From: Phaeosaccion multiseriatum | Taxonomy: Eukaryota > Protista > Ochrophyta, other classes | Reading direction: 5' to 3' | Assembly: GCA_965112735.1 (NCBI GenBank) | Contig: OZ218965.1 | Coordinates: 1,116,001 to 1,180,000, forward strand | DNA: 64,000 bases | Part shown: one piece after another, positions 24,096 through 41,610 of the stretch | Numbering within the stretch: the stretch's first letter is position 1 | How the letters are laid out: each line of letters opens with the position of its first letter | Made by a program: the position numbers and the translations under genes | The notes under the pieces: generated by a model | Told to the model about the DNA's origin: nothing | The model's database searches: none | What the model saw: the letters and a program-made list of their open reading frames with translations, nothing else

Positions 24096-27000
24096 TCACG
24101 GCTCCACCTCTTCGCAAGCAGGCTCTCCCGCGCACATGTTGATGATTTCACACGTGAGTGTGGGGTTGTTGGTCAGGTATTGCTGGGCACCTGAGGGATT
24201 GGTAATACAGAGGGAGGGAGGGGGGGGGGGGTGGAGGGAGGGAGAAAGGGGAGGGCGGAGGCGAGGGAAGGACGGAAGGGGAGGGAGACGCAAGGACAAG
24301 GACAAGCACAGGGGGTCGGAGGGGGGGTGGCAGTGAGCGAGGAGGCGAGGACAGAGAGGGAGGAGAATGCGGCACTGTTCACCGCGCACGCACGTATCAC
24401 GCACACACGCACGTATCACGCACACACGCACACACACACCCACACACCCACACACACACCTGCTTCGAGGAAGCATGCGCGGCAGTCTTGGCCTAGGCCG
24501 AAGAAGTTGCAGAGAATGCCATCAAAGGAAGTGCCTTCTTCCGAGCAGGTGGGGTCGCAGTACAGCTCTGTGGGTGTGCGGCAGGGGGGAAGGGAGCGAG
24601 AGAGTTCGAGAGGGAGGGAGGAAGGAAGGAAGAAAAGAAGGGAGGAAGGAAACGAAGAGCGAAGGGAGGAAGGAAGGAAGGAAGGATGGAAGAAAGGAGG
24701 AAGGAAGGAAGAAAGGAAGGAAAGAAAGGAAGAAAGAAGGAAGAAAGGAAGGAAAGAAAGGAAGAAGGAAGGAAGGAAGGAAAGAAAGAAGGAAGGAAGG
24801 AGGGAAGGAAGGAAGGAAGGAAGGAAGGGAGGAAGGAAGGAAGGAAGAAAGGAAGGAAGGAAGGAAGGAAGGAAGAAAGGAAGGAAGGAAGGAAGGAAGG
24901 AAGGGAGGAAGGAAGGAAGGAAGGGAGGAAGGAAGGAAGGAAGGAAGGAAGGAAGGAAGGAAGGAAGGAAGGAAGGAAGGAAGGAAGGAAGGAAGGAAGG
25001 AAGGAAGGAAGGAAGGAAAGGGTGGGGCGATTAGTCGGGGCAGACATTCACAGAGTCGAGAGTCAATCAAGTGTCTGAGACGCTAGAGGGTGGGCGGGCT
25101 GAGAGATGGACGTGATGCCTCCTCCGTCCGAAGCTTTGAAACAAACCTTCCTTGACCACACCCTCCCTCCTGCTTGCTACCCACAGGCAGCTCTTCTGTC
25201 CCGGTCGGTCGGCCGGTCGATCCGTCTGTCTGTGTGTCTGTCTGTGTGTCTGTCTGTCTGTCTGCCTGTCTGTCTGTCTGCCTGTCTGTCTGTCTGTCTG
25301 TCTGTCTGTCTGTCTGTCTGTCTGTCTGTCTGTCTGTGTATCTGTCTGTCTGTCTGTCTGTCTGTCTGTCTGTCTGTCTGTCTGTCTGTCTGTTTGTGTG
25401 TCTGTCTGTCTGTCTGTCTGTCTGTCTGTCTGTCTGTCTGTCTGTGTGTCTGTCTGTCTGCCTGTCTGTCTGTTTGTCTATACATCTCTCTACTCTCTCT
25501 CGCGCGCTCTATCTGTGCGACACCACGTACCCTTTCGTACCCTTACGTACCTTTATGGTTGTCATCCAGATAGGCCATGTCCATGGGCGTGGCGACGGCG
25601 TAGCAGTCCGAAGCCGTGGTGCAACCCCCAGAGAAGGGTGTTTCGGGCCTGCCTCCCACAAGAAGAGAAAGAAGAGGAGGGGGAACAGAAGAGGGGGGAG
25701 GAGAGAGGAAACAGAGACATGAGGCAGAGTTTGAAGTCACAAGCGAGGGTAGAGAAGCACATACGCTAATCTCATACGCGCACATCCACGTCCACACTCA
25801 CCCATACGCAGGCACGCACTCACAGGCATACGCACGCACACACAGACGCACACACACACATACAGAGCCGCGCACACACGCACACACTCTCAGTACTACT
25901 GCCTGTGTGAAACTGAAATGATCGAACTACCAGAAACACCTCAATGCTGGCTGAACAAGGAAGGGTGTGTTGCTGTGTGAGAACTGAGTACTTACGCTGG
26001 CGAAGGGGCAGAGGTGTCAAATCCCTCAACGACCTCGCAGTCACCGCCGTCAAACAGGCAAACTTCCGTGTTATATTCTCCTCCGTCGCAGAAACCGTCA
26101 CCAATCCACGATCTGAGGGGGTGAGGAGCAACCAACGGCGAGAAAAGGTTCAGCAGGCGGAGAGACCATCACAAAAACACACAAACTAAAACAAAGTGAT
26201 TTTCATTCGAGCAGCCCTCTCTGTCCCTGAGGGATGGAAGAGGGATATATGCATGTGTGTGTTGTGTGTGTGTGTGTGTGTGTAAGGATAGCCGAATGAT
26301 TAGTGGTCGTACTTACGGGATGGATACCACGCAGCCTGGAGGCAGTGCGGGTGCTGCTGCGGGGCTCGACGTCTCAAATCCGATGCAGTCACCACCATCA
26401 TACTCTGTGAACATGCACAATCACGACGAGAGGCGAAGCGAAGGGGAGGAGTCATCTAAGCGAGGGGCAGAGAAGAGCAGAGTAGTGTCAAGCTGTTTGG
26501 CTCACAGCTGGCGAGATACTTGAGCTGAAAATGGAGCTACCGCCCCCACCCATCCACTCACTTACCGCATACTTCCGTGTTATAATCTCCTCCGTCGCAC
26601 GCGCCGTCGCCAATCCACGATCTGAGGGGGTGAGGAGCAACCAACGGCGAGAAAAGGTTCAGCAGGCGGAGAGACAATCACAAAAACACACAAACTAAAA
26701 CAAAGTGATTTTCATTCGAGCAGCCCTCTCTGTCCCTGAGGGATGGAAGAGGGATGTATGCATGTGTGTGTTGTGTGTGTGTGTGTAAGGATAGCTGAAT
26801 GATTAGTGGTCGTACTTACGGGATGGATACCACGCAGCCTGGAGGCAGTACGGGTGCTGCTGCGGGGCTCGACGTCTCAAATCCGATGCAGTCACCACCA
26901 TCATACTCTGTGAACATGCACAATCACGACGAGAGGCGAAGCGAAGGGGAGGAATCATCAAAGCGAGGGGCAGAGAAGAGCAGAGTAGTGTCAAGCTGGT

Positions 27001-39100: not shown

Positions 39101-41610
39101 GATAGTACTTACGGGAAGTCTACCACACAGCCCGGAGGCAGTACCGGACAGTCACCGCCATCATACCCTGTGAACACGCACAATCATGACGAGAGGCGAA
39201 GCGAAGGGGAGGAGCCATAAGAGGGCAGGGTAGAGCAGAGGAGTGTCAAGTTGGTTGGCTCACAGCTGGCGAGCTGCCTCTATCCCACCCCCACGCCCTC
39301 CCGCTGGCCCAAGGCACACACACACACACACACACACGCACACGCACACGCACACACACACTTACGCCCACTTCCAGTTTCAGTTTATAAGATGATTTAT
39401 ACACTCACTCACCGCATACTTCCTGGGCATACGCTCCTCCGTCACAGTCACCGTCACCAATCCACTCTCTGATGGGGTGGGGTGCAACCAGCGGCGATAA
39501 CAGGTTCAGGCGGAGGCAGAGACAAGCCATAACAAAACAGAAGGAGGGTCTGAGTAACGCCCACTCTTAGCTACTCTCCCTCTCTGTCTCTGAGGAATCG
39601 AAGAGGGATGTATATATGTGTGTGTTGTGTGTGTGTGAACGAATGGAAGAGCGGCAGCTGCATGATTGGTGATTGTACTTACGGGTTAACTACCACACAG
39701 CCCGGAGGCAGTACCGGACAGTCACCGCCATCATATCCTGTGAACACGCACAATCATGACGAGAGGCGAAGCGAAGGCGAGGAGCCATAAGAGGCCAGAG
39801 TAGAGCAGAGGAGTGTCAAGCTGACACGGCTGCAAGGTAGAGCTACCACCCACCCACCCACCCACCCACCCACTCACCGCATACTTCCGTGGCATATTCA
39901 CTTCCGTCACAGTCACCGTCACCAATGTACGATCTGATGGGGTGGGGTGCAACCAGCGGCGATAACAGGTTCAGGCGGAGGCAGAGACAAGCAATAACAA
40001 GAACATGAGAGAGGGGAACTGACTTATTCGAGCAACGCCCACTCTTTCTCTCCCTCTCTGTCTCTGAGGAATCGAAGAGGGATGTATATATGTGTGTGTT
40101 GTGTGAGTGTGTGAACGAATGGAAGAGGGACAGATGGTACTTACGGGGTGGGTACCACACAACCGGGAGGCAGTGGTGCTGCCGAGGTCGTCTGCAGCTC
40201 GCGGTCGGCCTTGCGGAAGGGCTTGTGCTTCTTGTTCTTCGTCTTCTTGTTCTTCGTCTTCTTGTTCTTCGCGTGTGCAGCAGCAGAGGGGAGCTTGCGA
40301 CTTCCGCGGGCGATAGCATTAACGCTGCCGGTGGTGGAAACCAAGGAACAAGACAAAGCGACGGCCAAGGCGGGGAGGATCGAGACACAGAGTGAGGAGG
40401 TTGAAGCAAGTACTTGGTGGGGAGAACGGAGGGTGACGGCGGCAGCACCACCAGGAGTAGGCAGCCGCCGTGGAAACATTCAGTAGGCCAGGTCGGTCTG
40501 GCCGTGTCTCAGCACACACTTACCTTTCCAGGTGCTTCGTGCCCGGCTCTGCGACGAGGGCGTCGCCATACTTTAAGGGGGCGGAGAAGGTAAAGCAGGC
40601 CAGGTCCGCAGCAGAATTACTCACGGTCACCTGCAAGTGGGGGCAGGAGGAAGGCAGACGGAGGGGGGAGGGGAGGAGTGGCGTTGGCTGGAGTTGTGCA
40701 GGAGGCCTTAGCTAGCTACTACAATAGATCTGGTGACGACGGGCGCGGTAATTATCATCAATCTCGCAGACAACTACGTGACGCTTTGTTGTGGTTGTGG
40801 TAGCTAGCGCTTCAGTAGCTAGACGACGCACGGTCGGTGCCGTGGCTGGTCTTTCCATTACCACACGAACGTCCTCCTCCTCTTCCTCCTCCTCGCTCCC
40901 CCTCCTCCTCCTCCTCCTCGCTCGTCCTCCTCCTCGCTCCTCCTCCTCCTCCTCCTCCTCCTCCTCCTCCTCCTCCTCCTCCGCCTCTTCCTCTCACCTT
41001 CACCGCCCCTTTAGTGCCCAGGTCCTGCTTCAACTCCGCGCCGGCAACTTGAATCTCGCTGTAGGACGTGCACGCCTTGTACATCGATGAGGTATGGGCT
41101 GGGTCGGCTTCAATGCTGATGATGGTGGCACTCGTTCGATCACGCATCCTCATGGCGTCGGCACTCTTTGGATCGACACGCTTGGCCGCCGCACGTTCCT
41201 TGTGAGGGTTCTGGGAGGGAGCGAGGGAAAGGAGAGGGGCGAGCGAGGACGTCAGGGTGAAGACCGGCCGGGCGGGGTGCAGCAGCAGAGGCGCGCCAAA
41301 CAGTGACGAACAGCCAGGCCAAGTCAACCCCCACGCAGGCCAAGAATGCACCAAGCAACGAAGGGGCGTCGGGTGGGCCGTCACCAGGCGATGCACCTCA
41401 GCCGACTCCTCATTGTTGCCCAACTCTCCCATCGCTCCCTTATTGTTTCTTTTTTTACGCTTCTCATTATTCTTCCTCCTCCCTTCTTTTCCACAAGCAA
41501 CAACTCACGTATTTTCGGGTGACGATTTTCTCCTCGCCGCTGGCCCCCACCACCCCCAGGGCTGCGAGCGGCAGTCCCAGCAGCAGCAGTGTCTTGCCCA
41601 TGTTTACCAT
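33103..41610 (-). CDS. Secreted LNR repeat protein E2: 9 modules, SDTLAPSPA stalk and a C-terminal Cys-rich domain
   Basis: Signal [22 protein letters not shown]. 5' exons 41509-41610, 40998-41210, 40524-40630, 40145-40324. A cassettes (left coordinates) 39878, 39413, 38841, 38360, 37869, 37353, 36848, 36419, 35927. B cassettes 39683, 39113, 38646, 38074, 37619, 37095, 36637, 36177, 35474. Three 3' exons paralogous to E1; stop at 33103-33105. Confidence 0.85.
33680..34940. repeat. (GAAA/GGAA)n and long (GTCT)n intronic microsatellites of E2
   Basis: Directly visible. Confidence 0.95.
35476..35690 (-). repeat. Coding 27-bp minisatellite, (SDTLAPSPA)x7 plus one degenerate copy
   Basis: gcaagggtatc(a/g)cttgctggcgaaggt repeats inside the last B exon of E2; E1 has a single DTSAPSPA. 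Confidence 0.92.

Follow-up and report, generated by a model that had tools for sequence, protein, structure and literature searches.

Two tandem paralogous genes, E1 and E2, lie on the minus strand of the window (the whole 64,000-nucleotide stretch of Phaeosaccion multiseriatum DNA analysed here) and carry 7 and 9 two-exon cassettes, respectively (16 in total). The original prediction held that these cassettes are hypervariable at particular amino acid positions between conserved introns, as a result of diversifying selection on one binding face. The question raised by this locus is thus whether the encoded modules, which are of the LNR type, differ because selection favours their diversity. 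In Notch receptors LNR modules are conserved, calcium-stabilised clamps; many copies exist in brown algae, diatoms and other protists, and to our knowledge they have no known function.

The cassettes occupy positions 26317-29493 in E1 and 35474-39933 in E2, both on the minus strand, and a unit of roughly 470 bp was duplicated in tandem to build up the arrays. The A exon of each cassette is 56 nt long (incoming phase 2, outgoing phase 1), except in the sixth E2 cassette, where a 9-nt insertion extends it to 65 nt; the B exon measures 55-271 nt and is of 3n+1 length in every cassette. A module is encoded by two exons, of 3n+2 and 3n+1 nt, which are frame-neutral only as a pair. AG/GT splice sites were found in 16 of 16 cassettes, with no stop codons and intact frames, and the structure and frames are likewise intact in the 18 paralogous cassettes found outside the window; the two sets make up the genome-wide total of 34. 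The window cassettes are:

E2 cassette 1: 39683-39933, minus strand; A exon 39933-39878, B exon 39737-39683
E2 cassette 2: 39113-39468, minus strand; A exon 39468-39413, B exon 39167-39113
E2 cassette 3: 38646-38896, minus strand; A exon 38896-38841, B exon 38700-38646
E2 cassette 4: 38074-38415, minus strand; A exon 38415-38360, B exon 38200-38074 (long Pro/Ser/Thr/Ala linker)
E2 cassette 5: 37619-37924, minus strand; A exon 37924-37869, B exon 37676-37619
E2 cassette 6: 37095-37417, minus strand; A exon 37417-37353 (65 nt, three-codon insertion), B exon 37182-37095
E2 cassette 7: 36637-36903, minus strand; A exon 36903-36848, B exon 36694-36637
E2 cassette 8: 36177-36474, minus strand; A exon 36474-36419, B exon 36264-36177
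E2 cassette 9: 35474-35982, minus strand; A exon 35982-35927, B exon 35744-35474
E1 cassette 1: 29181-29493, minus strand; A exon 29493-29438, B exon 29265-29181
E1 cassette 2: 28705-29019, minus strand; A exon 29019-28964, B exon 28789-28705
E1 cassette 3: 28239-28503, minus strand; A exon 28503-28448, B exon 28296-28239
E1 cassette 4: 27783-28043, minus strand; A exon 28043-27988, B exon 27840-27783
E1 cassette 5: 27325-27580, minus strand; A exon 27580-27525, B exon 27382-27325
E1 cassette 6: 26820-27125, minus strand; A exon 27125-27070, B exon 26907-26820
E1 cassette 7: 26317-26621, minus strand; A exon 26621-26566, B exon 26404-26317

The B exon of E2 cassette 9 enters a 27-bp tandem repeat of 7.8 copies, which encodes a Pro/Ser-rich linker, and the Cys of a next module is absent from it. 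All 16 A-exon peptides are distinct and match exactly those listed in the original prediction. Its description of variable B-exon ends (NFP, DIP, DEP, FPP, SIP, VNP, DFP, DDP, FSP, EYP, DTP) was equally accurate, as was the invariance of the four Cys residues and of DGGDC across the window cassettes; DRRDC replaces DGGDC in a single paralogous cassette, which lies on another contig.

Further exons flank the cassettes. The N- and C-terminal ones were placed by splice-phase logic only, as was the putative secreted nature of the products.

E1 first LNR module: 29647-29801, minus strand; one unsplit exon, in which the next module's first Cys and loop are also encoded
E1 terminal LNR module: 25996-26112, minus strand; a single exon combines the A and B parts
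E2 Lys-rich exon: 40145-40324, minus strand; ends in the Cys and loop of the first module; predicted splice sites
E1 counterpart of the Lys-rich exon: about 30102-30270, minus strand; putative, predicted splice sites
Putative upstream E1 exons: 30479-31879, minus strand; 31879-31766, 31335-31153 and 30585-30479
Putative E2 counterparts of the upstream exons: minus strand; 41601/41610-41509, 41210-40998 and 40630-40524
Putative C-terminal Cys-rich exons of E2: 33106-35148, minus strand; about 35134-35020, 33639-33526 and 33198-33106
Putative E1 counterparts of the C-terminal exons: minus strand; about 25648-25547, 24571-24458 and 24191-24099

The first of the putative upstream E1 exons has a start codon and is signal-peptide-like, and these exons are phase-compatible with the Lys-rich exon. 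Long (GTCT)n and (AGGA)n microsatellites lie in the introns between the putative C-terminal exons of E2. When Pfam was searched exon by exon, the putative upstream exons gave no matches, and neither the upstream nor the downstream putative exons contained EGF repeats, a heterodimerisation (SEA-like) domain, a transmembrane segment or ankyrin repeats. Since this exon-by-exon search detected no heterodimerisation domain, EGF or other Notch parts in the flanking exons, it gave no support for a Notch receptor or negative regulatory region as the identity of these genes.

The modules themselves were assessed with Pfam profile PF00066, which was applied to split modules one exon at a time only. The terminal unsplit exon of E1 scored 25.4 bits, above the Pfam gathering cut-off of 21.2 bits; with 20.4 bits, its first unsplit exon fell slightly short. 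The terminal module of a paralog on contig 14 scored 24.3 bits. The E1 terminal module can be aligned to LNR-B of Notch1 (human negative regulatory region, PDB 3ETO), with which the algal modules share the spacing and motifs of the calcium site, namely an Asp-Gly preceding the third Cys, an Asp following it and a terminal DGGDC. Tandem arrangement is also common to both. However, Notch LNRs have three disulfides each (PMC3145759), whereas every algal module has four Cys (C-x11-C-x9-C-x6-C) and not the six of a three-disulfide LNR: Tyr stands in for the fourth Notch Cys, and there is no equivalent of the second. The algal arrays differ further in consisting of 8-10 consecutive modules with mucin-like linkers. 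As calcium ligands we considered the Asp of the Asp-Gly turn, the Asp/Asn after the third Cys and the two Asp of DGGDC. By sequence, these predicted ligands are present in 16 of 16 cassettes with few exceptions: E1_4 and E1_6 have His after the third Cys, E1_3 has Asn there, and Asn is also the first ligand of E1_3 and E2_5. Single-sequence AlphaFold2 gave no usable model of an unsplit exon (mean pLDDT 43.8). The products of E1 and E2 are probably secreted beads on a string: Pro/Ser/Thr/Ala-rich linkers connect small LNR-type modules that are predicted to bind calcium and to be disulfide-knotted.

We then compared the divergence of exons with that of introns. The predicted contrast between variable cassettes and conserved introns stands at the codon level for the cassettes, but the introns diverge about as much as synonymous sites. 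Mean pairwise divergence was 0.24 for intron 1 and 0.20 for intron 2; the A exon, at 0.215, lay between them, synonymous sites reached about 0.3, and the A exon exceeded the mean of its own introns in only 55 of 120 pairs; whole-exon divergence is no higher than intron divergence, contrary to what had been expected. Nor are neighbouring introns often near-identical, as had been claimed, for only 3 of 28 comparisons of adjacent introns fell at or below 5% and 6 of 28 at or below 10%. Intron 1, intron 2 and the exons each reject the trees of the others (AU p <= 1e-4), and segment-wise distance matrices likewise support a mosaic history. Gene conversion or unequal crossing-over has made the history of the cassettes a mosaic, and this ongoing remodelling has given introns and exons different genealogies. 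Because the segments reject each other's trees, part of the contrast between variable exons and conserved introns can be ascribed to mosaic gene conversion. The locus may thus serve as a worked example of variable exons between similar introns arising partly in this way, and since mosaic gene conversion can partly produce such a pattern, intron similarity alone is no evidence of exon hypermutation.

One example is E2 cassette 4, whose exons are far more diverged than its introns, synonymous sites included: the introns are 5-11% apart from those of cassettes 1 and 3, and exon synonymous divergence is 0.46-0.50 (for cassettes 3 and 4, 0.50 at synonymous sites and 0.07 in introns). Such pairs would be expected if the modules were old and conversion kept homogenising the introns, with conversions that cover exons purged or rarer, so that exons would be hypervariable only by comparison with freshly homogenised introns and no new adaptive substitutions would be needed. 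The difference in trees between segments fits this explanation, and so does the mean diversity of third (synonymous) positions (0.225), slightly above that of introns (0.14-0.19). Even so, it leaves unexplained why replacement rates exceed synonymous rates within the same exons, and the reverse case exists: some A exons of paralogous arrays are identical to each other, and two cassettes of the contig-12 array have identical exons with introns about 20% apart. We regard it as quite improbable by itself. It agrees in part with the explanation that we prefer (selection for differences between modules) and forms a component of it, because purging of exon conversions is itself a selection that maintains diversity.

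Selection on individual codons was examined with our own implementation of M1a/M2a, in which branch lengths were only rescaled and a single synonymous rate was assumed, on a tiny alignment of 33 codons. Under M0, omega was about 1.1-1.2 for the window cassettes and about 0.8-1.0 for all 34. M2a was favoured over M1a, with an LRT of 59-67 when the 16 window cassettes were used and of 76-107 with the full set of 34; omega2 was 5-10 at 14-21% of codons, the same sites were selected under three trees, and the signal persisted when F1x4 codon frequencies were used or only the A exon was analysed. By these estimates the dN/dS ratio at the variable sites is above 1, in line with the original prediction. 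The selected sites form one loop (xxPxx) together with the residue immediately preceding the third Cys (A7); the loop straddles intron 1, which splits the Pro codon, and its selected residues are the two before Pro (Bt8, Bt9) and the two after it (A1, A2). The codon statistics demonstrate strong purifying selection on the scaffold, which comprises the four Cys, the Asp/Gly motifs of the calcium site and Pro-Pro-Gly before the first Cys; at about five positions in each module, amino acids are replaced at several times the rate seen at silent sites or in introns.

These values could overstate selection. If constraint on the loop were only relaxed, with omega about 1, then omega > 1 would be an artefact of recombination or micro-conversion, multi-nucleotide events, saturation or a post-hoc focus in a very short alignment. 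Cassette recombination is a known inflator of site-model tests and mosaicism among the cassettes is strong; simulated nulls with a mosaic history gave an LRT of 0-11.9 (n=7 only). The changes are mostly multi-nucleotide and non-synonymous, as noted earlier: allowing double and triple changes improved the codon model by 33 lnL, and the high double-change rate (0.2-0.35) absorbed much of the initial signal, lowering the LRT from 67 to 20. Equal divergence of whole exons and introns agrees with relaxed constraint too, and the same positions are variable in distant metagenome relatives, as expected of unconstrained loops. However, with the multi-nucleotide model the LRT was still 20.3 (p = 4e-5) and 42.6 (p = 5.5e-10), far over the simulated nulls, and site A1 was recovered independently from the 18 paralogous cassettes alone (LRT 34.5, or 12.4 with the multi-nucleotide model).

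Parsimony counts also bear on this alternative. The first two positions of the five selected codons underwent 4.6 steps per site, compared with 1.3-1.5 in introns and 1.0-1.2 at third positions of other codons; their rate is 3-3.6 times that of an average intron site and about 4 times that of other third positions, which is beyond neutrality. At A1 and Bt9 there were 7-11 changes at the first two positions and 2-4 at the third, and such quiet third positions argue against a simple mutational hot spot. Intron-based non-parametric controls, corrected for the fact that the top sites were picked post hoc, were mostly, though not always, significant, ranging from p < 5e-5 to non-significant according to tree and column filter. 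Controls on own trees and on well-aligned columns gave p < 5e-5 to 0.02, and a tree-free diversity test of the window arrays p = 0.017 and p < 5e-5. For the 34 cassettes, non-significant outcomes came from the tree-free test when its intron columns were filtered loosely (p = 0.27) and from counting intron changes on the exon tree (p = 0.70), as relaxed constraint would have it. Weighing both sides, we find relaxed constraint unlikely as the sole cause. Diversifying selection, as predicted, is partly supported: a few codons show faster amino acid change, but the introns are not unusually conserved and the intron-based controls are mixed.

Taken as a whole, the locus is best described, with reasonable but far from full confidence, as tandem-duplicated, conversion-remodelled LNR arrays in which about five putatively ligand-facing residues per module diversify. 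The fast change of the loop probably reflects selection for diverse binding surfaces, achieved through ordinary evolution rather than dedicated diversifying machinery. The selected positions would lie on the loop leading into the calcium site and form a putative ligand-contacting surface; selection would favour differences between modules and remove conversion events that homogenise exons, so that the protein may present a series of different binding sites. In this reading the modules would be variable binders, unlike the conserved autoinhibitory clamps of Notch. A comparable principle is seen in LDL-receptor class A modules, tandem disulfide-knotted units of about 40 residues in which an invariant acidic calcium cage beside an aromatic residue holds the fold and variable neighbouring residues set ligand specificity; the analogy may extend to the algal modules, although fold family and Cys pattern differ. 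Diversifying selection on a defined loop by the calcium site would make the arrays candidate recognition molecules, and it would define which residues to mutate and which modules to express in a search for ligands.

The nearest described system is that of the Ectocarpus ROCO-LRR and NB-ARC-TPR genes, which encode one repeat per exon and undergo exon shuffling and diversifying selection (Zambounis et al. 2012, PMC3341825). Both systems occur in stramenopile-type genomes, have repeats on tandem exon cassettes remodelled by recombination, and show codon-model diversifying selection at a few repeat positions. In contrast to the one-exon 3n repeats of Ectocarpus, the LNR module is spread over two exons of asymmetric phase (2 to 1, 1 to 2) and its boundary is offset from that of the cassette. 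GTPase and NB-ARC signalling domains are absent here, and the scaffold is a predicted extracellular calcium-binding knot instead of an LRR/TPR solenoid.

The Ectocarpus exon arrays also provide the precedent hypothesis for programmed diversification (PMC3341825). At the present locus, an A exon would be spliced in frame to the B exon of a cassette further along, combinatorially or in a mutually exclusive manner, or the LNR repertoire would arise by somatic recombination or hypermutation. The phases permit in-frame skipping of any whole number of cassettes, and intron ends are conserved across four loci. Symmetric cassette phases are, however, a by-product of tandem duplication; in a six-frame motif scan of the window all DGGDC-type copies were on the minus strand and in register, with none on the plus strand, and the introns, unlike those of the Ectocarpus arrays, are free of repeat exons that are spare, inverted or inactivated. 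Duplication and conversion in the germline, with selection, suffice, and programmed diversification appears highly improbable. That the arrays might constitute a recognition repertoire (for example gamete, self/non-self or pathogen), with the LNR knot as a scaffold for hypervariable binding and germline diversity multiplied by combinatorial splicing or somatic rearrangement, is, in our opinion, very improbable.

Notch/LNR families of brown algae and diatoms are numerous and vary in copy number between lineages, and they resemble the window genes at the domain level; we found no publication on two-exon cassette arrays or site-specific positive selection in them. PF00066 is present in 31 Ectocarpus proteins (PMC3874173), Notch/LNR clusters number 11 and 8 copies versus 2 and 1 in two Ectocarpus species (10.1101/307165), and 16 Notch-domain genes are expressed in Ectocarpus gametes (PMC3879662).

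The window belongs to contig 16 of a 67-Mb, 22-contig assembly; its DNA is eukaryotic and GC-rich, with introns of the GT-AG type. Two paralogous minus-strand genes, E1 and E2, lie in tandem at approximately 25990-40400. Each gene contains an array of ~470-bp cassettes, seven in E1 and nine in E2 as counted by a motif scan and a splice-site scan, and every cassette is built of an A exon and a B exon, each preceded by an intron. The A exon is entered in phase 2 and left in phase 1, the B exon shows the opposite phases, and the two are frame-neutral only as a pair. AG/GT borders and the absence of stop codons were found in 32/32 window exons. 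The parts of the cassettes and the features that frame the arrays are as follows.

Cassette, intron 1: 149-230 nt
Cassette, A exon: 56 nt (65 nt in the single cassette with a three-codon insertion)
Cassette, intron 2: 140-245 nt
Cassette, B exon: 55-271 nt
29801-29647, minus strand: first module of E1, a single unsplit exon
26112-25996, minus strand: last module of E1, A and B parts fused
31879, minus strand: putative start codon and signal-like segment of E1, placed by splice-phase logic
~41601, minus strand: putative start codon and signal-like segment of E2, placed by splice-phase logic

The same cassette occurs in two further arrays of the genome, on contig 14 (14 cassettes and a fused terminal module) and on contig 12 (4 cassettes). 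We rule out a pseudogene or decaying array, because splice sites, lengths and frames are intact in 34/34 cassettes. The sole length variant among the 34 A exons is that of E2 cassette 6 (37353-37417), where an in-frame 9-nt insertion stands right after the Asp that follows the third Cys.

The unsplit E1 exons match Pfam PF00066 (LNR) with 25.4 bits (last module) and 20.4 bits (first module; cut-off 21.2) and align residue for residue with human Notch1 LNR-B. In Notch, each LNR has three disulfides and binds a calcium ion through Asp side chains and backbone carbonyls (PMC3145759). Whereas the Notch LNR has six Cys, the algal module has four (C-x11-C-x9-C-x6-C), with a Tyr at the position of the fourth Notch Cys; at the level of sequence, the Asp/Gly motifs of the calcium site are retained. 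Module and cassette boundaries are offset: a module's first Cys and the opening half of its first loop come from the 3' end of the B exon before it, and the mid-loop Pro is the codon split by intron 1. AlphaFold2, run on the unsplit 51-residue exon as a single sequence without alignment, gave a pLDDT of 43.8, too low for a usable model. Modules are separated by linkers with abundant Pro, Ser, Thr and Ala. In E2, the last B exon holds 7.8 copies of a 27-bp unit (35476-35685, 95% matches) that encodes a nine-residue Pro/Ser-rich repeat; E1 lacks an expansion of this type.

Splice-phase logic suggests that each gene opens with a start codon and a hydrophobic, signal-like segment, followed by two short exons, a Lys-rich exon, the LNR array and three Cys-rich C-terminal exons. 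The putative upstream and C-terminal flanking exons, searched exon by exon, had no Pfam matches. In E2 the Lys-rich segment runs into the first-module Cys without a break, as one predicted exon (40324-40145). In E1 the junction between the Lys-rich exon (30102-30270) and the first LNR exon (29647-29801) is out of phase with the obvious GTGAGT donor, and this 5' part may involve another donor, a small missed exon or damage.

All 16 A-exon peptides and the B-exon ends read exactly as listed in the original prediction, which had proposed diversifying selection on one binding face. For the codon models we aligned 33 codons per cassette (18 of the A exon, 6 of the B-exon head and 9 of the B-exon tail), and fitted M0, M1a and M2a in an in-house implementation with fixed topologies and a single branch-length scale. 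Omega under M0 was 1.1-1.2 for the 16 window cassettes, and M2a was compared with M1a on several trees.

Likelihood-ratio tests (LRT) of M2a against M1a, with omega and share of codons in the selected class
16 window cassettes, exon tree: LRT 67; omega 8-10; ~20% of codons
16 window cassettes, intron tree: LRT 59; omega 8-10; ~20% of codons
16 window cassettes, F1x4 frequencies: LRT 51; omega 6.3; 16% of codons
34 cassettes, exon tree: LRT 107; omega 5-8; 15-17% of codons
34 cassettes, whole-cassette tree: LRT 76; omega 5-8; 15-17% of codons
34 cassettes, intron tree: LRT 81; omega 5-8; 15-17% of codons
A exon alone, own tree: LRT 82; omega 12; 22% of codons

The A-exon sites A1, A2 and A7 and the B-exon tail site Bt9 were selected in every run, and Bt8, A15 and Bt6 in some. 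The impression that the changes are mostly multi-nucleotide was borne out: since many substitutions hit two or three bases of a codon, double- and triple-change rates were added to the model, and they improved the null by 33 lnL units (double-change rate 0.2-0.35). With these rates the LRT falls to 20.3 for the 16 cassettes (p = 4e-5) and to 42.6 for the 34 (p = 5.5e-10), with omega of ~5-6. The 18 paralogous cassettes alone gave an LRT of 34.5, or 12.4 with the multi-nucleotide model, A1 being selected in both. A null for mosaic history was obtained from seven M1a simulations, in which three segments evolved on different trees (one tip-shuffled) and were analysed on re-inferred trees. The LRT in these seven data sets was 0-11.9; the null is thus inflated above the chi-square expectation, yet stays far under the observed values.

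Model-free counts on the window cassettes were made as Fitch steps. To correct for the post-hoc choice of sites, the five codons of highest variability were also set against the five highest-ranking triplets among 33 drawn at random from the introns.

Fitch steps per site, window cassettes
Five selected codons, positions 1+2: 4.6
Introns: 1.3-1.5
Other codons, third positions: 1.0-1.2
Other codons, positions 1+2: 0.6-0.75

Control for post-hoc choice, five most variable codons against intron triplets (window; 34 cassettes)
Own tree per partition, loose columns: p < 5e-5; p = 0.02
Own tree per partition, well-aligned intron blocks: p < 5e-5; p < 5e-5
Intron steps on exon tree: p = 0.044; p = 0.70
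Tree-free diversity test, loose columns: p = 0.017; p = 0.27
Tree-free diversity test, strict columns: p < 5e-5; p = 0.003

Because the third positions of A1 and Bt9 are quiet, changing 2-4 times on the tree against 7-11 times for codon positions 1+2, this variability is unlikely to come from a simple mutational hot spot. Nor are the codons seen at A1 those that CpG decay of its common Ser codon would predict. The proposal of diversifying selection stands in part: the codon models prefer M2a over M1a at a few sites, but of the intron-based controls most are significant and some are not (p < 5e-5 to 0.70). Taking models and controls together, it is likely, though not proven, that some five positions have undergone excess amino-acid change.

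The other half of the original prediction, that variable exons are set among conserved introns, fared less well.

Mean pairwise divergence, 16 window cassettes
Intron 1: 0.241
A exon: 0.215
Intron 2: 0.199
B exon, conserved head and tail: 0.169

Whole exons are not above the introns in divergence; the A exon was more diverged than its introns in 55/120 window pairs. Nor are the introns unusually conserved, as their 0.241 and 0.199 compare with a mean proportion of synonymous differences of 0.305 in the 33 core codons (non-synonymous, 0.19), and only 3/28 adjacent intron comparisons are within 5%. The contrast does hold in particular pairs: in the four pairs with both flanking introns at most 12% apart, the A exons are 17-24% apart. 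However, synonymous sites are equally diverged in some, and for cassettes 3 and 4 of E2 synonymous divergence is 0.50 against an intron divergence of 0.07. In AU tests, each of the three partitions (intron 1, intron 2, exons) rejected the trees inferred from the other two (p <= 1e-4). The arrays are thus mosaics that arose by gene conversion or unequal crossing-over, and the exon/intron contrast is to some extent one of history, not of rate. A locus on contig 12 (2343714-2345803, minus strand) shows the reverse of the variable-exon/similar-intron pattern: the A- and B-exon cores of two adjacent cassettes are identical and their introns ~20% diverged.

In sequence, the selected sites cluster around the putative entry to the calcium site. 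Bt8, Bt9, the split Pro, A1 and A2 make up a contiguous xxPxx segment that follows the first Cys and precedes the Asp-Gly calcium turn, and A7 immediately precedes the third Cys, being equivalent to the His of Asp-Gly-His-Cys in Notch1 LNR-B. A15 and Bt6 lie next to two Cys that would be partners under the Notch topology.

The most economical account has three parts. Cassettes were duplicated in tandem; conversion and crossing-over among them continue; and selection would retain the calcium-knot scaffold while favouring loop residues that differ from module to module. A dedicated diversifying mechanism is not required by anything in these data. Combinatorial splicing through the frame-neutral cassette is possible in principle, though improbable.

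LNR-domain proteins are many in brown algae, with variable copy number (PMC3874173; 10.1101/307165), and are expressed in brown-algal gametes (PMC3879662). The nearest described parallel is found in Ectocarpus, where exon-per-repeat arrays of LRR and TPR type show diversifying selection (PMC3341825). In contrast to these, the algal LNR cassettes have a different scaffold, and E1 and E2 use two exons of asymmetric phases per cassette, are without spare or inverted exons in the motif scan of the window, and showed no signalling domain in the exon-by-exon Pfam searches. With the 51-residue exon as query, we found four metagenome loci with unsplit four-Cys LNR-type modules on AT-rich eukaryote-like contigs, too distant for dN/dS. 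Several consecutive unsplit four-Cys modules each are present on Ga0209092_10000418, Ga0115008_10012491 and Ga0213868_10004818 (34-38% GC). The module type is therefore widespread beyond P. multiseriatum, and its splitting by an intron appears lineage-specific. A word search with the terminal unsplit exon yielded no candidates within the searched length range, longer relatives falling outside it. The B exon of the first contig-14 cassette (locus 2795-2851) has DRRDC in place of the otherwise invariant DGGDC, so that the two Gly adjoining calcium ligands are replaced by Arg.

Simple repeats accompany both genes. A (GGGT)n run directly after the GTGAGT donor of intron 2 has, on the coding strand, the four G-runs of a G-quadruplex pattern; we rejected it as a general cassette feature because it occurs in just 7/16 window cassettes (e.g., 39871, 38834, 38353, 28429, 27515) and 1/18 paralogous ones. 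A nearly perfect (CTC)105 microsatellite (30833-31148, 99% matches) is most likely intronic, lying between putative upstream exons 2 and 3 of E1; its E2 counterpart (40872-40993) is far shorter and impure. (AGGA)n and (GTCT)n microsatellites of up to 180 units (33679-34024, 34233-34949, 24611-25018 and 25224-25479) occupy equivalent positions in the introns that separate the C-terminal exons of E1 and of E2; they were thus passed on when the gene duplicated and altered in length afterwards.
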